Source: Bacillus subtilis subsp. subtilis str. 168
GTDB lineage: Bacteria > Bacillota > Bacilli > Bacillales > Bacillaceae
Assembly (NCBI RefSeq): GCF_000009045.1
Contig: NC_000964.3
Location: 558,001 to 622,000, forward strand
DNA length: 64,000 nt
Direction of reading: 5' to 3'
The notes under the pieces were generated by a model. It was not told where the DNA came from, did not search any database, and saw only the letters and a program-made list of their open reading frames with translations. Positions within the stretch are counted from its first letter, which is position 1. Each line of letters opens with the position of its first letter. Shown here one piece after another: positions 4,502 through 33,975 of the stretch. The position numbers were made by a program, and so were the translations under genes.

Positions 4502-5461
4502 ATGAATACTTCCAATAGAAGAATGGGATTGTTCTATGTTATCACAGGGGCGACATGTTGGGGGATTGGAGGCACAGTAGCCAAAAAACTTTTTCAAGAA
4601 TATCAAATTGATGTCAATTGGCTTGTAACGACACGCTTGCTTACGGCTGGAATGTTACTTTTAATGCTGCAACTGTTCAGAAAGGATCGTTCCCAGGTTA
4701 TTGAGGTGTGGAAACACAAAGCGTCGGCTGGCCAGCTTCTAATTTTTGGCCTATTGGGAATGCTAGCTGTGCAGTACACATATATGGCATCCATTCAACA
4801 TGGGAATGCTGCCGTTGCTACGTTATTGCAATATTTATCCCCAGTAATCGTCATTATCTACACGCTGTTGCGAAAACAAACGGTTCTTACCAAACAAGAT
4901 ATCATAACTGTTGTACTTGCTTTAGTGGGTTGCTTTTTTTTGTTAACAAATGGTTCAATGTCTCAACTTTCAGTGCCGGCAGCTGCAGTAGTATGGGGAG
5001 TTTTATCAGGATTCGCGGCAGCTTTTTATACTTTGTATGCCGTTGGTTTATTAAATAAATTTGATTCTCTTGTCGTTGTAGGTTGGGCTATGATTATTGG
5101 CGGTTTTGCATTGGGTTTTATCCATCCGCCATGGCAACTGGATTTTCAACGATTAACTGCTGAGGCGTATGCATATATCTTATTCGTGATATTATTTGGA
5201 ACAATGATTGCGTTCTGGTTCTTCATAAAAAGCTTGGAAAGCCTCTCTCCAAAAGAAACAAGCCTACTAGGCAGTCTAGAGCCTCTATCAGCTGTTGTAA
5301 CAACTGTCGTTTGGTTAAAAGCGCCATTTGGTTCTTTTCAATGGATTGGTGCTATTTGTATTATAGGGATAACTTTAATATTGGCTTTACATAAAGAGCC
5401 TTCTATGGAGAGTGAAAAATCGATATTAAAGATTAGGAATCATGCAAATCGGGATATATAG
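4502..5461 (+). CDS. ydeD: EamA/DMT (RarD/YicL-like) transporter
   Basis: ~10 hydrophobic segments, duplicated EamA pattern, divergent from AraC gene; start 4502 behind GAGGAG. Confidence 0.9.
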
Positions 5462-5534
5462 GGGCTTTTTTTGCTTACATGACCGGTCCGGCAATGAAAA
5501 ACACTGGTGGAGTTTGAGCCCTCTCGGCAGTATC

Positions 5535-5570
5535 AAAAATACCAAGGGTTTTGACGCCCTAGGTATTTTT
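5535..5570. repeat. Palindromic element copy 1 (AAAAATACCAAGGG-TTTTGACG-CCCTAGGTATTTTT), probable bidirectional terminator
   Basis: Between convergent ydeD and ydeE; near-identical to the reverse complement of 17670-17704. Confidence 0.8.
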
Positions 5571-5613
5571 TCTTCAAGAACCTTCAATTTTTCTTCTCTG
5601 ATTGAAAAACGTA

Positions 5614-6486
5614 TTACTTTTTTGTGATTGGTATCCAAATTTCACTTTTAAAAGATGGTGATGTTACATCCTTATGCTCGTTCCACAATATTTCTGGACC
5701 TTCTATTTGTTCGTAATTTGACGATGGAAACCATTCGGAATAAATGCGTCCCCATACTTCTTGCAGTGTATCCGGAAATGGCCCGATTGATTCGAATACA
5801 GCCCATGTTGAGGCAGGAACTTCAAGCCGTGAGAAGTTATCTGGACACCGTTTCGTTGTGGCTGCGCCAATATAGTGATCGAGCTCTCCGTTTTCCTCTG
5901 TCCGACCTTCAGAAAAATTCGTGGATGCACTAATGAGGCCTGATGGTGCTACATTAGATAGCTCTTTTAGTTTATTTATTGCTTTTTCATCTAAACTTTC
6001 CCACATAGATGCAATTTCCGGATTAATTCCTTTGAAAATAATAGGAACTCTTTTTTTAATGCCAACGATGCGAAATGCCTCTTTTTCTTCAATACGGTAG
6101 TTCATTTCATTTCCTCCTTTAATTGTTAGCTGGAAGGTCATTCGTGGATAAGCTTTAAGGGAATGGCCATTAAATCTGGCTTTTGATGGGTTTATGCCAT
6201 GTAAATTTTGGAATGCCCGTGCAAAAGAATCTGGTGAGTTATAACCGTACTTTATTGCAATATCAATCACTTTTACATTGCTGTCTTTCAGTTCAAAAGC
6301 TGCAAGAGTAAGACGTCTGCGACGAATATATTCCGATAATGAAATACCTGCAAGGAAGGAAAACATCCTTTTAAAATGATATTCAGAGCAGAAAGCAAGC
6401 TTTGCTGCCTCTTGAAAATCAATATCATTAGTGAGGTTTTCTTCAATATACTTTAACGCCCTATTCATACTTTTAAGCAAATCCAT
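5614..6486 (-). CDS. ydeE: AraC-family regulator with GyrI-like effector domain
   Basis: N-terminal AraC HTH ([22 protein letters not shown]), C-terminal GyrI-like domain (EIWIPI). Confidence 0.9.
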
Positions 6487-8210: not shown

Positions 8211-9503
8211 ATGATGTTAGACAAGGACAGCGTAAAAGCAATAGATGTTCAAACTGCTTCATTACAGAGCTACATCAGTTCACCAGAAAAACAAAAATCG
8301 TTATACAAGCGTACACTATTCGTTGTGAGTATCTCACAAATTTTTGGCGGTGCGGGGCTGGCGGCAGGAGTGACTGTCGGTGCGCTTATTGCACAGCAAA
8401 TGCTTGGCACTGATGCGTTTGCTGGTTTGCCTTCTGCTTTATTTACTTTAGGGTCAGCAGGATCTGCATTAATTGTTGGAAGACTTTCTCAACGTTATGG
8501 CCGTCGAACAGGTCTTTCAGCTGGCTTTATGATTGGCGGACTTGGAGCAATAGGCGTTATTATGGCAGCAATCATAAATAGTATTTTCTTGTTATTTATT
8601 TCGTTGCTTATTTACGGTGCAGGTACAGCCACTAATTTACAGGCCCGTTATGCAGGTACAGACTTAGCAAATCATAAGCAGCGAGCGACTGCTGTTAGTA
8701 TAACCATGGTTTTTACTACATTTGGCGCAGTGGCAGGTCCAAGCTTAGTGAATGTGATGGGGGATTTCGCTCTTTCTATTGGTGTTCCATCACTTGCTGG
8801 CCCTTTCATTTTAGCCGCAGCAGCATATATGTTAGCAGGTGTGGTCCTTTTCATTATGCTTCGTCCAGATCCATTAGTTATAGCAAGAACAATAGAAGCG
8901 GCAAATGAAGAGCCTGGTGATAAAGGACATTTGGCGGCAACTGAGCATACAGAAAACAAAAAAGGGATAATCGTTGGGGCAACGGTTATGGTTCTTACCC
9001 AAATAGTAATGGTAGCTATTATGACAATGACACCGGTTCATATGAGACATCATGGGCATGACTTGGGTGCAGTCGGTCTTGTTATTGGTTTTCATATAGG
9101 TGCTATGTATCTCCCTTCACTTGTTACAGGTGTTCTTGTAGATAGGTTGGGACGTACCGCAATGGCTATTTCCTCTGGAACAACGTTGCTTTTGGCAGGT
9201 GTAATAGCAGCATTTGCTCCGGGAGAATCTATGATTCTTCTCGTCATTGCTCTTTCTTTACTGGGATTAGGGTGGAATTTTGGTTTGATAAGCGGGACTG
9301 CCCTTATTGTAGATTCAACTGATACTGCCACACGAGCTAAAACGCAGGGGACAGTGGATGTTCTGATTGCGTTGTCAGGAGCTGCTGGCGGAGCATTATC
9401 TGGAATGATTGTGGCAGGTTCAAGTTACCTCGCATTATCACTTATTGGAGGGATTTTGTCCTTATTACTCATTCCGGTGGTGGTATGGTCTAGGGGCCGC
9501 TAA
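8211..9503 (+). CDS. ydeG: MFS transporter
   Basis: 12-TM pattern, GRLSQRYGRR and DRLGR MFS loop motifs; alternative TTG start at 8187 also has an SD. Confidence 0.9.
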   Translation: MMLDKDSVKAIDVQTASLQSYISSPEKQKSLYKRTLFVVSISQIFGGAGLAAGVTVGALIAQQMLGTDAFAGLPSALFTLGSAGSALIVGRLSQRYGRRTGLSAGFMIGGLGAIGVIMAAIINSIFLLFISLLIYGAGTATNLQARYAGTDLANHKQRATAVSITMVFTTFGAVAGPSLVNVMGDFALSIGVPSLAGPFILAAAAYMLAGVVLFIMLRPDPLVIARTIEAANEEPGDKGHLAATEHTENKKGIIVGATVMVLTQIVMVAIMTMTPVHMRHHGHDLGAVGLVIGFHIGAMYLPSLVTGVLVDRLGRTAMAISSGTTLLLAGVIAAFAPGESMILLVIALSLLGLGWNFGLISGTALIVDSTDTATRAKTQGTVDVLIALSGAAGGALSGMIVAGSSYLALSLIGGILSLLLIPVVVWSRGR

Positions 9504-27867: not shown

Positions 27868-28548
27868 ATGAATCCTAATATTGCAAAAATCTCTTCGTTG
27901 CTATCAGATCCCTCGCGTTCTTCCATTCTTCTCAGTCTGATGGATGGAAGGATACACCCTGCGGGAGAGCTTGCATATCTCGCTAACATTAAACCTCAAA
28001 CTGCAAGTTTTCACCTGAATAAATTGCTTGAAGCAAAGCTGATTAGCGTAGAGAAGCATGGGAGACATCGGTATTACAGATTGGCTGACTCAGATGCTGC
28101 AAATGTGATCGAACAATTGCTTCATATTGCGCCTAAAGCAAAAGTCAAATCTTTAAAAGAGTCAAAAGAGAAAAAGGACTTGCATTTCGCCCGGACCTGT
28201 TATGATCATTTGGCAGGTTATGTGGGCGTGCAAATGGCACATTCACTAGTTGAGCAGGGGATGTTAAAAAAAGTTGATTTAAACTTTGAGGTGACTTCAG
28301 AGGGTGCTTTATTCTTTTCGAAGTTAGGCATCAATGAAGAGCAACAACGGAATAAGAGGAGAGCCTTTGCCCGCTGCTGTTTGGATTGGAGTGAACGGCA
28401 GCATCATATTGCAGGAGCATTAGGAAACGCCCTATTGGTGCGCATGTTAGAAGAAGAATGGATCGTTCGTATGCCTAAAACGAGAGCGATTAGGATTACA
28501 CAAAGCGGGAAAATCGCGTTTGAAAAGCACCTAAACGTGAAGATTTAG
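27868..28548 (+). CDS. ydfF: ArsR-like winged-helix regulator with Cys-containing C-terminal domain
   Basis: DPSRSSIL, TASFHLNKL, GRHRYYRL, ARTCYDHLAG, CLDWSERQHH. Confidence 0.9.
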   Translation: MNPNIAKISSLLSDPSRSSILLSLMDGRIHPAGELAYLANIKPQTASFHLNKLLEAKLISVEKHGRHRYYRLADSDAANVIEQLLHIAPKAKVKSLKESKEKKDLHFARTCYDHLAGYVGVQMAHSLVEQGMLKKVDLNFEVTSEGALFFSKLGINEEQQRNKRRAFARCCLDWSERQHHIAGALGNALLVRMLEEEWIVRMPKTRAIRITQSGKIAFEKHLNVKI

Positions 28549-28592
28549 GATTTTGAAGCGGAAACATCAGATGATGAGGCACGATATCTAGG

Positions 28593-28622
28593 AGGAGTAA
28601 GATTTGTTCTAATCTTACTCCT
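28593..28622. terminator. Bidirectional terminator between ydfF and ydfG
   Basis: AGGAGTAAGATT / AATCTTACTCCT 12-bp stem. Confidence 0.75.
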
Positions 28623-28627
28623 TCTTC

Positions 28628-29071
28628 TTATTTTGAAGCAGCTCGATTCCCCATTGCAATAGAGATGCGGTTCCAACTGTTTATTTGATTAATGATCAGA
28701 ACAAGGTCAACATATTGTTCCTCATCATAATGTTCCCGCACCCGATGATATAGCTCATCAGGAACCCTTTTAGATGGAATGAGCGTGATGTGTTCAGATA
28801 GTTCGAGAGCCGCTTTCTCTTCAGGTGAGTAAAAATCACATTCATTCCAAGCATGTAAACAGTAAATTCGCTGTTCAGTTTCTCCCATTTTGCGGGCATC
28901 GGACGTATGCATATCTATGCAGAAGGCACAGCCGTTCATTTGAGAGACTCTGATTTTGATTAGTTCTCTCGTCGTTCGGTTAATTGAGGATTGTTTCGTG
29001 TATTTCTCCATATCCATCATGATTTTCATACCTTCAGGTGCAATCTCATAGTAGGACACTCTTTGACTCAT
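28628..29071 (-). CDS. ydfG: AhpD/carboxymuconolactone decarboxylase-family protein
   Basis: SQMNGCAFCIDMH CxxC motif, INSWNR. Confidence 0.92.
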   Translation of the reverse strand: MSQRVSYYEIAPEGMKIMMDMEKYTKQSSINRTTRELIKIRVSQMNGCAFCIDMHTSDARKMGETEQRIYCLHAWNECDFYSPEEKAALELSEHITLIPSKRVPDELYHRVREHYDEEQYVDLVLIINQINSWNRISIAMGNRAASK

Positions 29072-29156
29072 AAAGCAAGACTCCTTTCCATAGAATACCT
29101 AGATTGTATCCCGGTATTGATCATTTTACCAATGTGCGGTTTGAATGACAGCTGTT

Positions 29157-29330
29157 TCAGCGTCTTTTGGAAAGAAGCTTCTTTGAATAAAAATAAGGGT
29201 AGCCAGCAATGATGAGTGGAGCTGCTAATGCAAGCAGTATCCATGAGCCTGATTGGCTGTCTCTAGTGACTCTAATGAATATATAAGTACCGATCAGAAA
29301 ATATAATAAAGCACCTAGAAACCAATACAT
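29157..29330 (-). CDS. ydzP: 57-aa two-TM membrane microprotein (MYWFLGALLYFLIGTYIFIRV...YSKKLLSKRR)
   Basis: Read by hand; ATG behind GAGGAA, two hydrophobic helices, basic tail; below the ORF-track cut-off. Confidence 0.75.
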   Translation of the reverse strand: MYWFLGALLYFLIGTYIFIRVTRDSQSGSWILLALAAPLIIAGYPYFYSKKLLSKRR

Positions 29331-29332
29331 GT

Positions 29333-29476
29333 TCATTCCTCTTTTTCCTTGCTTTTTGGTTGCGCATTTTTGTCTGTCATATGGCTTAATCGATCAGGGT
29401 TCTGATTTTTTAATACCTTTTCGGTCCGGATTCCTTTTCTCTTTAATGATAAAATTGTGAGATCAATCGATTTCAA
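29333..29476 (-). CDS. ydzQ: 47-aa basic soluble microprotein (MKSIDLTILSLKRKG...KSKEKEE)
   Basis: TTG start behind GAAGGA; stop lies 2 nt before the ydzP ATG. Confidence 0.55.
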   Translation of the reverse strand: MKSIDLTILSLKRKGIRTEKVLKNQNPDRLSHMTDKNAQPKSKEKEE

Positions 29477-29544
29477 TGATGATCATTCCTTCAATGAATA
29501 GTAAGTTCCTTATGATTTTAAAGGTAAATTTGAAAAGATAAAAC

Positions 29545-29579
29545 GTACATAGAGGCAGAACGTTCATGTACGTTTGGGC
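29545..29579 (-). promoter_or_regulatory. YdfI-box copy facing ydzQ-ydzP
   Basis: GCCCAAACGTAC (29568-79) and GCCTCTATGTAC (29545-56) on the minus strand, 24 nt before TAAAAT (29515-20). Confidence 0.65.
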
Positions 29580-29743
29580 AATGATCACTTGTTGGAAACT
29601 CTAATGTTTCCCTGCACCTGATATTGTTGTGTTCCTTCTCTTCCTATAAAATGATTGGATACATGTATGTTTGCACGTTGAAATATGGGTTCGATTTTCA
29701 TGAATCTCTATTCGGTGAAACAGGTAAAGGAAGTGGATAAGGT

Positions 29744-30967
29744 TTGCTTATAAGGAATCCTTTTAAAGATAAATATTACTCACATGATAGGCGGGCATTA
29801 AACATGCTTGCACTCAGAGTGCCGGGCCTGGCTTTTATTCTCATGATCTATATAGCCTCTATCGTGCTGCAATTTGTTTCTGGGGGCTGGTCCATTTTAT
29901 TGCTTTATGCGTTTACCATATTAATCGCCATTTTTGCTTTGCTTCATTGGCACTCATATCGCTGGGTTAAGAAAAGAGTGATTCTGTATTTCGCGGTACA
30001 AGGTTTGATCACCTTTGCACTTGCTAATCTCATGACTGGCTTCTTTATACTTGTGATTATCGGCCTTTATGCATTTTTAATTGGACAAATTATAGGAATG
30101 GCAGACAGAAGAAGGACTTTTCTCATTCTTTATCTATTGCTGCTGCTGGTCATAAATTCGGCGTATCACCTTCATAAAGGTGAAGTTTTGCATTTTATTG
30201 TTATTGCTGCGCCGATCATGATTGTCATCATCACTTATGCCGCAACATTTTTTGCCCAAGTCGATGAAAAAATAAAAGCTCAATTGACTCTTGAAAGGCT
30301 GGAGCTGGCTCATCAGCAGGTAGAACAGCTGACGCTGCAGAACGAAAGACAGCGGATGGCCCGAGACTTACACGATACGCTTGCTCAAGGTCTTGTCAGT
30401 TTAAATATGCAGCTGGATGCGATTCATGTTCATCTCGCCAAAGGCAACACAGAGAGAGCGAAGGAAATCATACAACAATCGATGAAAAGAGTGAAAAGCA
30501 CAATAGCTGATGCACGTTCAGCTATTGACGATCTCCGCAGCAAATCAGAAGAAATCGGTGTTTTAAAAGAAAGAATTACCTCGCTAATGGATCATTTTAT
30601 AGAGTCGACAGGCATGGCTTGTTTATTAGATTACAGATTGCATCAGGTGCTGGATGTGCGTACAGCTGAAAACTGTTATTACATCATTGGAGAATGCATG
30701 ACGAATGCGGCAAAGCATGCTGAGGCGAAAACAATCTGGATATCCATTTGGGATGATGAAAAGGGAAGGCTCCATTTAACAGTTAAGGATAACGGCAAGG
30801 GATTTGATGTTGAAAAAGGAAAGAAAAAGAGAGGACATTATGGGCTTCTTGGCATACAAGAACGCGTCAGGGCAATAAATGGCCAATTCAATATCAAGAG
30901 TACAAAATTGAAAGGAACACAAATTGAGATCACTGTACCAATTCAGGGAGAGATGCAAGATGAATAA
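29744..30967 (+). CDS. ydfH: Membrane sensor histidine kinase (HisKA_3, NarX/DesK-like)
   Basis: ERQRMARDLHDTLAQ H-box, NAAKHA, DNGKGF, GHYGLLGIQER. Confidence 0.95.
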   Translation: MLIRNPFKDKYYSHDRRALNMLALRVPGLAFILMIYIASIVLQFVSGGWSILLLYAFTILIAIFALLHWHSYRWVKKRVILYFAVQGLITFALANLMTGFFILVIIGLYAFLIGQIIGMADRRRTFLILYLLLLLVINSAYHLHKGEVLHFIVIAAPIMIVIITYAATFFAQVDEKIKAQLTLERLELAHQQVEQLTLQNERQRMARDLHDTLAQGLVSLNMQLDAIHVHLAKGNTERAKEIIQQSMKRVKSTIADARSAIDDLRSKSEEIGVLKERITSLMDHFIESTGMACLLDYRLHQVLDVRTAENCYYIIGECMTNAAKHAEAKTIWISIWDDEKGRLHLTVKDNGKGFDVEKGKKKRGHYGLLGIQERVRAINGQFNIKSTKLKGTQIEITVPIQGEMQDE

Positions 30968-31601
30968 GGTTTTAATCGTTGATGACCATCTTGTCGTGAG
31001 GGAAGGTCTGAAGCTTTTAATTGAAACGAATGATCAATACACCATTATAGGAGAGGCGGAAAATGGAAAAGTAGCAGTCCGTCTTGCAGATGAATTAGAA
31101 CCGGATATCATTCTGATGGATTTGTATATGCCGGAGATGAGCGGGTTAGAGGCCATTAAACAAATAAAAGAAAAACACGATACCCCCATCATTATTTTGA
31201 CTACATATAATGAAGATCACTTAATGATCGAAGGGATTGAATTAGGAGCGAAAGGATATCTGTTAAAAGATACGAGTTCAGAAACCCTTTTTCACACAAT
31301 GGATGCAGCCATCAGAGGAAATGTGCTATTGCAGCCTGATATCCTTAAACGTCTGCAAGAAATCCAATTTGAGCGGATGAAAAAGCAGCGCAATGAGACG
31401 CAGCTGACAGAAAAGGAAGTCATTGTTCTAAAAGCAATTGCTAAAGGTCTTAAAAGCAAAGCGATTGCCTTTGATTTGGGCGTCTCTGAGCGAACAGTAA
31501 AGTCCAGATTAACGTCCATTTACAATAAATTAGGCGCGAATTCAAGAACTGAGGCAGTAACGATTGCCATGCAAAAAGGTATTCTGACAATAGACAACTA
31601 A
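30960..31601 (+). CDS. ydfI: NarL/LuxR-family response regulator
   Basis: VLIVDDH, ILMDLYMP, LTEKE..LuxR HTH; ATG overlaps the ydfH stop. Confidence 0.95.
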   Translation: MNKVLIVDDHLVVREGLKLLIETNDQYTIIGEAENGKVAVRLADELEPDIILMDLYMPEMSGLEAIKQIKEKHDTPIIILTTYNEDHLMIEGIELGAKGYLLKDTSSETLFHTMDAAIRGNVLLQPDILKRLQEIQFERMKKQRNETQLTEKEVIVLKAIAKGLKSKAIAFDLGVSERTVKSRLTSIYNKLGANSRTEAVTIAMQKGILTIDN

Positions 31602-31619
31602 ACTGCATATTTGAAAATT

Positions 31620-31674
31620 GCCCAAACGTACATGCCCGAATGTACGTTTTTTTCATTTCATTGTCAACTACAAT
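31620..31674 (+). promoter_or_regulatory. YdfI tandem-repeat binding site and -10 of ydfJ
   Basis: GCCCAAACGTAC-AT-GCCCGAATGTAC, then 23 nt to TACAAT; matches the reported YdfI site as I recall it. Confidence 0.8.
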
Positions 31675-31716
31675 GAGAAAGAATGTGATCAAGCAATGTG
31701 TTGAAAGGAGATTATC

Positions 31717-33891
31717 ATGTCAAAAATGTTATATACATTAGGAGGATGGGTTGCTCGCAATCGCATAAAAGCAATATGTGCGTGGATCGTTGTGTTAGTT
31801 GCTGCGATAGGCCTTGCAGTGACCTTGAAACCAAGTTTTTCTGAGGATATGTCCATACCTGACACACCTTCGGAAAAAGCGATGGATGTGATTCAAAAAG
31901 AATTTCCTCATGGTCCTGATAAAGGGAGCATACGGGTTATTTTCGGTGCTGGTGATGGGGAGAAACTTACTGGGAAGCCAGCAAAAAAAGCAATAGAAGA
32001 TACGTTCAAAGAAATCAGTAAAGATGATTCTGTTGACTCGATTGCAAGTCCTTTTGTGACAGGGACAATCGCGAAAGATGGCACAGTTGCCTATGCTGAT
32101 ATCCAGTATAAATCATCAGCAGATGATATAAAGGATTACTCTATCAAACACTTAAAAGACAGTTTGAAAATGGCTGATGATGAAGGATTGCAAACTGAGC
32201 TAAGCGGAGATGTACCGGGAGCGGAGATGGAGATAGGCGGTGTCTCTGAAATTGTCGGCATTATCTTGGCTTTTGTCGTTTTAGCCATTACATTCGGTTC
32301 TTTATTAATAGCAGGTTTGCCGATTTTAACTGCACTGATTGGTTTAGGTGTAAGTATTGGACTGGTTTTGATTGGGACACAAGTATTTGATATTGCTTCT
32401 GTCAGTCTTTCATTAGCCGGAATGATTGGCCTTGCTGTTGGTATTGATTATGCTTTATTTATTTTTACGAAACACCGCCAGTTTTTAGGCGAAGGCATAC
32501 AAAAGAATGAATCAATTGCGAGAGCCGTGGGAACAGCGGGAAGTGCAGTGGTTTTTGCCGGACTTACTGTTATCGTTGCACTTTGCGGATTAACTGTCGT
32601 TAACATTCCTTTTATGTCTGCGATGGGGCTGACAGCAGGGCTTAGTGTACTGATGGCTGTTTTGGCTTCCATCACACTTGTGCCTGCGGTCTTATCGATT
32701 GCAGGGAAGCGGATGATTCCGAAATCAAACAAGAAAATAGAAAAACAAAGCACTGAAACAAATGTCTGGGGACGCTTTGTCACCAAAAATCCTATCATGC
32801 TAAGTGTATGCAGCATTCTGATTTTGATCGTCATTAGTATCCCATCTATGCATTTGGAACTGGGCTTGCCTGATGCTGGGATGAAAGCTAAGGATAATCC
32901 GGATCGCCGGGCATATGACTTGCTTGCCGAAGGCTTTGGAGAAGGATTTAATGGCCAATTAACAATCGTAGCGGATGCCACAAATGCTACAGAAAATAAG
33001 GCGGAGGCTTTCGCAGATGCAGTGAAAGAAATAAAGGGCTTAGACCATGTAGCAAGTGTCACTCCTGCAATGCCTAATAAAGAAGGGAACTTTGCCATCA
33101 TTACGGTCGTTCCTGAAACAGGTCCAAATGATGTCACAACGAAAGATTTGGTACATGATGTACGCAGTTTATCAGATAAAAACGGAGTAGATTTGCTTGT
33201 TACTGGATCAACTGCAGTGAATATTGACATTTCAGATCGCCTGAATGATGCGATACCGGTGTTTGCTGTACTTATTGTTGGCTTTGCGTTTGTATTGCTG
33301 ACCATCGTTTTCCGTTCGCTGCTTGTGCCGCTTGTTGCTGTTGCAGGTTTCATGTTGACGATGACAGCCACTCTTGGAATCTGTGTATTTGTCTTGCAAG
33401 ACGGGAATCTCATCGACTTTTTCAAAATACCTGAAAAAGGGCCGATACTCGCGTTCCTGCCGATTTTATCGATTGGGATTCTGTTCGGGTTAGCCATGGA
33501 TTATCAAGTATTCCTTGTCAGCAGAATGCGTGAAGAATATGTAAAAACAAACAATCCAGTACAAGCCATTCAGGCTGGATTAAAACACAGTGGTCCTGTT
33601 GTTACAGCAGCCGGCTTGATCATGATCTTCGTTTTTGCAGGATTTATCTTTGCAGGCGAAGCTTCTATTAAAGCCAATGGGCTGGCTCTTTCCTTTGGTG
33701 TACTCTTTGATGCCTTTATTGTAAGAATGACACTGATTCCAAGTGTCATGAAGCTGATGGGGAATGCAGCCTGGTATTTGCCGAAATGGTTAGACAAGAT
33801 TATTCCGAATGTGGATATAGAAGGGCATCAACTGACAAAGGAAATACAGCCGGAAATAGATCATGAACAAAAGAAACAAATCAGTGTGTAA
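31717..33891 (+). CDS. ydfJ: MMPL/RND-family transporter
   Basis: GLAVGIDYALF and FGLAMDYQVFL MMPL motifs, two membrane halves. Confidence 0.95.
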   Translation: MSKMLYTLGGWVARNRIKAICAWIVVLVAAIGLAVTLKPSFSEDMSIPDTPSEKAMDVIQKEFPHGPDKGSIRVIFGAGDGEKLTGKPAKKAIEDTFKEISKDDSVDSIASPFVTGTIAKDGTVAYADIQYKSSADDIKDYSIKHLKDSLKMADDEGLQTELSGDVPGAEMEIGGVSEIVGIILAFVVLAITFGSLLIAGLPILTALIGLGVSIGLVLIGTQVFDIASVSLSLAGMIGLAVGIDYALFIFTKHRQFLGEGIQKNESIARAVGTAGSAVVFAGLTVIVALCGLTVVNIPFMSAMGLTAGLSVLMAVLASITLVPAVLSIAGKRMIPKSNKKIEKQSTETNVWGRFVTKNPIMLSVCSILILIVISIPSMHLELGLPDAGMKAKDNPDRRAYDLLAEGFGEGFNGQLTIVADATNATENKAEAFADAVKEIKGLDHVASVTPAMPNKEGNFAIITVVPETGPNDVTTKDLVHDVRSLSDKNGVDLLVTGSTAVNIDISDRLNDAIPVFAVLIVGFAFVLLTIVFRSLLVPLVAVAGFMLTMTATLGICVFVLQDGNLIDFFKIPEKGPILAFLPILSIGILFGLAMDYQVFLVSRMREEYVKTNNPVQAIQAGLKHSGPVVTAAGLIMIFVFAGFIFAGEASIKANGLALSFGVLFDAFIVRMTLIPSVMKLMGNAAWYLPKWLDKIIPNVDIEGHQLTKEIQPEIDHEQKKQISV

Positions 33892-33975
33892 TAGAAAAAG
33901 CAGATCTTTTATGATCTGCTCTTTTGCTTATGGTAGTATTTAGAAGATGAAGTCGGCAGTTAAAAGGAGACGCTT

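Follow-up and report, generated by a model that had tools for sequence, protein, structure and literature searches.

Does the YdfHI two-component system of Bacillus subtilis control a second promoter, placed beside its own genes? The described regulon of this system consists of one gene. The operator of ydfJ is said to have been defined by Serizawa and Sekiguchi in 2005 (Microbiology 151:1769), PydfJ being reportedly a promoter activated by YdfI. The window analyzed here, 64 kb of B. subtilis 168 DNA, includes the region ydfF-ydfG-ydzP-ydzQ and, divergent from ydzQ, the genes ydfH-ydfI-ydfJ. The promoter in question, PydzQ, precedes ydzQ and carries a box made of two 12-mers. The reading proposed, to which we assign a probability of about 0.7, is that ydzQ-ydzP is an operon transcribed from a YdfI-activated sigma-A promoter, and part of a transferable ydfHIJ module. 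A YdfI-type promoter for ydzQ-ydzP within the ydfHIJ module had been suggested in an earlier note on this DNA; the geometry of the candidate promoter, its conserved footprint, the co-transfer of the genes and a network model dating to 2015 all argue for it.

The elements of PydzQ, and the PydfJ operator taken as reference, are the following.

29579-29568, minus strand: distal 12-mer GCCCAAACGTAC of PydzQ, which agrees at every position with the consensus GCCCRAAYGTAC published for the YdfI repeat.
29567-29566 and 29565-29557, minus strand: 11-nucleotide (nt) spacer between the 12-mers, made of AT and GAACGTTCT, respectively.
29556-29545, minus strand: proximal 12-mer GCCTCTATGTAC of PydzQ, which reads GCCTTTATGTAC in other species.
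29544-29521, minus strand: T-rich stretch of 24 nt (GTTTTATC...), with GTTTT at 29544-29540, occupying the -35 region.
29520-29515, minus strand: -10 hexamer TAAAAT of PydzQ.
31620-31645, plus strand: PydfJ operator GCCCAAACGTAC-AT-GCCCGAATGTAC, followed after 23 nt by TACAAT at 31669-31674.

PydzQ and PydfJ lie in the same locus, and have in common the family of 12-mers, the orientation, the T-rich stretch and the missing -35. The proximal 12-mer is separated from the -10 by 24 nt at PydzQ, by 23 nt at PydfJ. Seventeen consecutive bases (ATTGCCCAAACGTACAT) and 11 bases (ATGTACGTTTT) are identical in the two promoters, and the distal 12-mer is the same in both together with 5 flanking bases. 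The promoters differ in the interval between the 12-mers, which measures 11 nt (period 23) at PydzQ and 2 nt (period 14) at PydfJ, in the proximal 12-mer (GCCTCTATGTAC vs GCCCGAATGTAC), and in the target, which is two microproteins in one case and a transporter in the other. The repeats, the -10, their coordinates, the distances of 24 and 23 nt and the missing -35 are all as the earlier note had read them. The description of PydzQ as a tandem repeat like that of ydfJ stands in part: two 12-mers are present, but they do not form a ydfJ-type tandem, the spacer being longer by the 9 nt GAACGTTCT, which had been overlooked.

A usable -35 is not found at PydzQ, where the best hexamers, TTTTAT and GTTTTA, match at 2/6 positions. 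In agreement with the missing -35, neither PydzQ nor PydfJ is listed by a scan of the window for sigma-70 consensus promoters. Transcription of ydzQ is predicted to start near 29508, leaving a 5' untranslated region of ~32 nt. From this architecture we infer that YdfI may bind PydzQ and activate it. Phosphorylated by YdfH, YdfI would bind the 12-mers of PydzQ as at PydfJ, and would recruit sigma-A RNA polymerase to a promoter devoid of a -35. Activation of the class II type by phosphorylated YdfI, parallel to that of PydfJ, is deemed probable. One signal would switch on the YdfJ transporter, YdzQ and YdzP together.

The PydzQ box is not due to chance. Perfect copies of GCCCRAAYGTAC occur 3 times in the window, all at PydzQ and PydfJ, while ~0.03 would be expected by estimate. 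When up to 2 mismatches are allowed, 8 matches are counted vs 9.7 expected from shuffled sequences, and only exact GCCCRAAYGTAC matches therefore carry weight. The composite inverted repeat AAACGTACAT-N6..16-ATGTACGTTT is found twice in the window, and in none of 100 shuffles.

Two further sequences of the region deserve mention. The inverted repeat GGGAAAC-N6-GTTTCC (29594-29612, minus strand) is located immediately 5' of the distal 12-mer of PydzQ, and its arms covary in some species (GAACC...GGTTC in B. inaquosorum). The sequence GAACGTTC, found in the extra spacer, was considered as a third half-site and dropped, as it is not conserved across species.

No change in either 12-mer, in the 24-nt distance or in the -10 TAAAAT is seen across a close set of 7 species, formed by B. 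subtilis, B. stercoris, B. inaquosorum, B. spizizenii, B. haynesii, B. swezeyi and B. sonorensis. Within the same set, 5 bases of the extra spacer and 40 nt upstream of the box vary. In B. atrophaeus and B. halotolerans, in which YdfH is 81–85% identical, the DNA 5' of the box is unalignable and the stretch from the -10 to ydzQ has diverged. Here PydzQ reads GCCCCAACGTAC-AT-AAGAATAT-GCCCTTATGTAC-GTTTT, with 24 nt in all before TAAAAT, and is followed by ydzQ, of 35–37 amino acids (aa), and ydzP, of 56 aa. In a third module type (loci L090 and L092) the period is 24, and TAAAAT once more follows after 24 nt. The distal 12-mer has one mismatch in the L090/L092 variants, as in those of B. atrophaeus and B. 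halotolerans. Spacers of ydzQ boxes measure 10–12 nt, and periods 22–24, in the other lineages; the 24-nt distance between 12-mer and -10 is constant in 8 tabulated loci, which represent all 4 lineages with ydzQ. YdfI, for its part, keeps the region of its recognition helix (SERTVK..LT.IY.KLG) in all compared lineages.

Similar arrangements mark the promoters of MMPL transporter genes. Most of the 12 tabulated have a 12-mer 23–24 nt from the -10, and no -35. A metagenome scan in which 0–12 extra spacer bases were allowed retrieved only 0, 8 or 9. In one metagenome lineage, featuring the order ydfH-ydfI-ydfJ and products 42% (YdfH), 60% (YdfI) and 54% (YdfJ) identical, the MMPL promoter reads GCCCAAACGTAC-AT-N8/9-GCCCTTATGTAC, and TAGAAT or TAGGAT follows after 24 nt. 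Because relatives use a long-spacer operator at the MMPL promoter, the longer spacer of PydzQ is probably harmless, and the long-spacer arrangement looks like a natural operator form; a period of 14 may accordingly not be a defining feature of YdfI operators. Single 12-mers are found in Priestia and in the B. pumilus group. All these promoters may obey one operator rule, according to which a proximal 12-mer lies 23–24 nt from the -10, and an optional distal 12-mer is set at +14 or at +22–24.

Additional 12-mer-like sequences reside in the Priestia megaterium locus (L088; 9222-9233, minus, and 9364-9405, plus). Only one 12-mer, followed after 24 nt by TACGAT, marks the MMPL promoter of this locus. 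Another, GCCCTTACGTAC, is found 24 nt from TAGGAT, in the opposite direction. It faces a 65-aa Cys-rich open reading frame (ORF) without Pfam family, and could represent a different "second arm" in the Priestia lineage. The palindrome ATGCCCTTAAGGGCAT (L088 4935-4950, plus) is located ~60 nt 5' of the ydfH ortholog, and its halves resemble the start of the 12-mer (GCCCTTA).

Which gene does the box serve, ydzQ or ydfH? The intergenic region in which it sits, 165 nt 5' of the ydfH start, is shared by the two, and the box might serve only the positive autoregulation of the divergent ydfHI genes, with ydzQP transcribed from an unrelated promoter, or constitutively. This is improbable. It is only on the ydzQ strand that the orientation, and the 24 nt separating the box from a conserved -10, correspond to PydfJ. 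The ydfHIJ genes of B. siamensis and of the amyloliquefaciens-type locus are accompanied by a normal PydfJ box, but ydzQP and a box 5' of ydfH are both missing; the same holds for the ydfHIJ genes of the L102/L107 lineage. In locus L090 (CP048852.1; 5452-5890) ydfH is gone, as is the receiver half of ydfI, and ydfJ, ydzQP and both boxes are retained. In B. stercoris ~80 nt between the box and ydfH are deleted, and the box is intact. Since it is absent from loci lacking ydzQP, kept in L090 and spared in B. stercoris, the box is assigned to ydzQ, the gene with which it occurs, rather than to ydfH, in all these sequence comparisons. The B. stercoris deletion (L001 ~3943, corresponding to 29609-29685 of the window) removes the best candidate ydfH promoter, TTGTTG-17-TAAAAT on the plus strand, as identified by hand reading.

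The 12-mer/-10 unit also accompanies a ydzQ-like gene in B. zhangzhouensis, a member of the B. pumilus group (L089; YdfH 44% identical). A gene for a YdzQ-like peptide (MKSIESIIKALKNKGILVEKV..., E 7e-6 to protein P0176) follows GCCCTTACGTAC-24 nt-TAAAAT, and is placed directly upstream of ydfH. As this 12-mer promoter faces the ydzQ-like gene and ydfH on the same strand, it may also feed ydfHI, and autoregulation is plausible there. The PydzQ box may also have a dual, bidirectional role. The B. zhangzhouensis locus has a third 12-mer, GCCCTTTCGTAC (L089 4547-4558, minus), 25 nt from TAAAAT, which faces a cytochrome P450 gene (3266-4468, minus) divergent from the ydzQ-like/ydfH unit. A transposase of the insertion sequence type separates ydfI from the convergent MMPL gene.

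If the box drives ydzQ, are ydzQ and ydzP genuine genes? In the window they are arranged as follows.

29476 (TTG) to 29333 (stop), minus strand: ydzQ (BSU05409), 47 aa, with ribosome binding site GAAGGAA at 29492-29486.
29336..29157, minus strand: ydzP (BSU05408), annotated as 59 aa from ATG 29336; 57 aa (MYWF...) if read from ATG 29330.

Names, locus tags and lengths of ydzP (59 aa) and ydzQ (47 aa) are those given in the supplement of Arrieta-Ortiz et al. 2015 (PMC4670728). The ATG at 29336 overlaps the stop codon of ydzQ as ATGA. In the seven species ydzQ measures 47, 49, 49, 56, 56, 56 and 55 aa, and always overlaps ydzP by ATGA. Overall, orthologs of ydzQ vary from 35 to 56 aa, with 25 conserved N-terminal residues and a basic tail which is variable. 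Insertions and deletions in the two genes measure 3 to 27 nt, and every one is in frame. The TTG of B. subtilis is replaced, at the same codon, by ATG in B. inaquosorum (L002), L089, L090 and L092. In the close set the first 29 codons of ydzQ exhibit 6–7 synonymous vs 1–4 non-synonymous changes, and the ratio of non-synonymous to synonymous change (pN/pS) ranges from 0.04 to 0.17; values of 0.26–0.58 were obtained for ydzP. Ribosome binding sites are conserved for both genes, and the ATGA overlap is preserved in subtilis- and licheniformis-type loci. On the strength of in-frame indels, of the TTG/ATG alternation at one codon and of low pN/pS values, ydzQ and ydzP are, by sequence comparison, real coding genes under purifying selection.

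The alternative that ydzQ, ydzP or both are untranslated, the transcript being a non-coding RNA or a leader, is very hard to reconcile with these patterns, to which it may be added that no Rfam match is found across window positions 28000-32500. In its favor are the extreme shortness of the ORFs, the TTG start of ydzQ in B. subtilis, and searches of Pfam, NCBIfam and PDB sequences, which retrieve no family for either YdzQ or YdzP. The 47-aa ydzQ is thus confirmed where the earlier note had placed it. The start of ydzP is likely to be ATG 29330, because the ORF opens with M[YF]W in diverged orthologs (MYWF, MFWF or MYWT in B. atrophaeus, B. halotolerans, L090 and L092); a 57-aa product, as the earlier note had it, is favored over the annotated 59 aa.

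YdzP is predicted to be a two-helix membrane hairpin of 56–57 aa. The AlphaFold2 model consists of a helical hairpin (helices 3–23 and 28–55; predicted local distance difference test, pLDDT, 69), and is in line with the two transmembrane segments previously proposed. YdzQ, as modelled, would be a cytoplasmic peptide of 35–56 aa, structured in the N-terminal 20–25 aa and ending in a disordered basic tail; the AlphaFold2 model features an N-terminal helix plus a turn, the first 20 residues having pLDDT >90. Both models are short, and their confidence is modest. A profile search with YdzQ in 1.84 billion proteins retrieved four YdzQ-type clusters only. The anti-adapter SpxO (YirB, NF041458) is, as YdzQ, a basic Bacillus peptide of ~50 aa. 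The match between the two is weak, is limited to residues 1–21 of YdzQ and the N-terminus of the SpxO model (E 0.015, 15.5 bits vs a cut-off of 107), is absent from the profile search in 1.84 billion proteins, and is taken as chance, or as a very remote kinship at best.

The genes flanking PydzQ, and the unit they form with ydzQP, are listed below.

29744..30967, plus strand: ydfH, sensor kinase of the HisKA_3 type, whose N-terminus is a multi-pass membrane region.
30960..31601, plus strand: ydfI, NarL/GerE-type response regulator of 213 aa.
31717..33891, plus strand: ydfJ, MMPL-family transporter of 724 aa (PF03176).
29152..33929: module ydzP-ydzQ/ydfH-ydfI-ydfJ, 4.8 kb, bounded by the stop codon of ydzP and a point shortly beyond ydfJ.

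DNA of B. haynesii, B. swezeyi and B. sonorensis is ~90% identical at the nt level to the interval 29152-33929, and unrelated to the window on either side of it; the identity extends over loci L004-L006 and L082-L084, each set in an unrelated neighborhood. The same five genes are found in a different neighborhood in B. paralicheniformis. Synteny of ydzP with ydfHIJ orthologs, which the earlier note had proposed to look for, is thus observed in the licheniformis group, where the five genes are found together. They appear to behave as one transferable unit, and high nt identity along with different insertion sites suggests recent horizontal transfer of the whole module. A strong terminator closes ydzP in the licheniformis group; none was found between ydzP and ydfG in the window.

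The PydfJ operator region (31624-31656, plus) doubles as a terminator-like hairpin, with a 10-bp stem (AAACGUACAU/AUGUACGUUU), a 6-nt loop and a U7 run. The hairpin has an energy of -13.9 kcal/mol (z -2.9) and lies 23 nt past the stop codon of ydfI. One stretch of DNA may therefore be used twice, both terminating ydfHI transcripts and binding YdfI. PydfJ and the DNA-binding domain of YdfI already serve as parts in synthetic biology (Landry et al. 2018, PMC5897336), where a NarL-REC/YdfI-DBD chimera, in a ydfHI deletion strain carrying NarX, puts PydfJ115 under induction by nitrate.

A link between ydfI and ydzQP had surfaced before. In the network of Arrieta-Ortiz et al. 2015 (PMC4670728, Dataset EV7), where ydzQP is listed as an operon, positive interactions connect ydfI to ydzP (beta 0.304) and to ydzQ (beta 0.318). 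Both sit among the "Top 500 novel predictions", and the knockout, motif and ChIP columns are marked ND or NA (PMC4670728). The network model provides weak, independent support for regulation of ydzQP by ydfI. It offered no operator, promoter, conservation or module analysis, in contrast to the present work. Other predicted targets of YdfI are yfiN, ykvO, yqjC, yrzP and yvaC. The earlier note had called ydzQP a hidden arm of the YdfHI system; the term is overstated, given the 2015 listing, and what appear to be new are the cis-element, its conservation and the structure of the module. A full-text search of the literature for ydzP, ydzQ, BSU05408 and BSU05409 found no text discussing either gene. 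In one sheet of 45 expression conditions, ydzP and ydzQ are correlated (r 0.55), and ydzP and ydfG are uncorrelated (r -0.13).

Several observations weigh against control of ydzQP by YdfI as part of the module. The proximal copy GCCTCTATGTAC has 3 mismatches to the consensus GCCCRAAYGTAC, and the spacing differs from that of PydfJ, the sole characterized operator. The mismatched positions vary also in ydfJ boxes of other species (GCCCCTATGTAC in L007/L087; ACCCGAATGTAC). The 2015 prediction is low-ranked, with beta about 0.3, and expression-based (PMC4670728). In the 45-condition sheet, whose dynamic range is too small to judge co-regulation, the correlation with ydfJ is r 0.31 for ydzP and r 0.14 for ydzQ, no better than that of the neighboring ydfK. 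The ydzQP genes outlive their presumed regulator in L090 and in L092-L094; in the latter (4807-5797) ydfH is frameshifted, ydfI and ydfJ are missing from the locus, and ydzQ (51 aa) and ydzP (56 aa) are intact. These loci look like decay states of the module. The persistence of ydzQP in spite of a lost or damaged two-component system implies that the genes may not depend strictly on YdfI, or that such copies are decaying. Alleles of ydzP are frameshifted in some assemblies of the B. subtilis group. The break falls within or after the second helix (P0004, P0020, P0021 and P0022), and the alleles may be strain-level pseudogenes or sequencing errors. P0022 had been considered as a distant YdzP, and was ruled out as it is a frameshifted allele in a subtilis-type context. 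Lastly, the assignment of roles to YdzQ and YdzP is speculation based on gene position only.

Could the box then be a relic in decay, left perhaps by a duplication of the ydfJ promoter and now devoid of function, ydzQP being independent of YdfI? The degenerate proximal repeat and its spacing, the weak correlation with ydfJ in expression and the survival of ydzQP after loss of the two-component system (L090, L092) would fit. A relic is, nevertheless, slightly more improbable than a box reserved to autoregulation. The box is conserved in lineages in which the non-coding DNA around it can no longer be aligned, and its distance from the -10 is constant; the long-spacer design recurs at MMPL promoters of other lineages; and a -10 without -35 requires an activator. 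Activation of PydzQ by YdfI remains the preferred reading.

What would the products of a YdfI-controlled ydzQP operon do? MgrB with PhoQ/PhoP, SafA, and Sda with KinA are small modulators of sensor kinases, some of which are induced by the cognate regulator. By analogy, YdzQ and YdzP are microproteins encoded beside a two-component system, apparently induced by it, and one of the two would be embedded in the membrane. Sequence similarity to the MgrB-type proteins is missing, and YdzQ and YdzP differ from these in forming a pair, made of a soluble basic peptide and a membrane hairpin. Kinases sensing via membrane helices only often rely on accessory membrane proteins, and the YdfH sensor is likewise made of membrane helices only. 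We tentatively suggest that the microproteins could modulate signalling, by feedback or by setting a threshold, with YdfH/YdfI as the target of YdzQ and the membrane domain of YdfH as that of YdzP, rather than serve as transporter subunits. The weak tilt towards signalling is due to the YdzQ-like gene adjoining ydfH in the B. pumilus group, and to the many YdfJ orthologs found without ydzQP.

That YdzQ and YdzP are, under YdfI control, accessory subunits of the MMPL transporter YdfJ seems unlikely. Small proteins bound to pumps of the RND superfamily have precedents, as AcrZ with AcrB and MmpS with MmpL. By the same logic YdzQ and YdzP would be small proteins co-regulated with an MMPL, hence RND-superfamily, transporter through one type of operator; YdzP is modelled as a membrane hairpin, and L090 retains ydfJ and ydzQP after having lost ydfH and half of ydfI. 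However, YdzQ and YdzP have no similarity to MmpS, AcrZ or any Pfam family, and their genes do not share a transcript with that of the transporter. In many cases (amyloliquefaciens-type, Priestia, L102/L107) orthologs of YdfJ are not accompanied by ydzQP, and L092-L094 keep ydzQP without ydfJ in the locus. In B. zhangzhouensis, moreover, the YdzQ-like gene sits with ydfH, the MMPL gene being separate and convergent.

Within the signalling role, a more detailed scheme may be imagined, though it is doubtful. YdzQ and YdzP would work as a two-part feedback device of a new kind, built into the transferable module, in which the N-terminal 20-residue motif of YdzQ would dock on YdfH/YdfI, and the YdzP hairpin would insert among the helices of the kinase or of the transporter, setting the threshold or the duration of signalling.

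The second operon, with its two conserved microproteins, enlarges YdfHI as a unit of study beyond a single-gene regulon, and makes deletions, tagged proteins and a second reporter available as new reagents. It is also a well-supported example of small proteins associated with signalling systems, of which more and more are being listed. The generalized operator rule may be used to search for further YdfI targets. If the proposed regulation is true, the system would have in PydzQ a second natural output promoter, with an operator spacing different from that of PydfJ; and the two-part feedback device, if true, would give the first experimental handle on the stimulus of YdfH.

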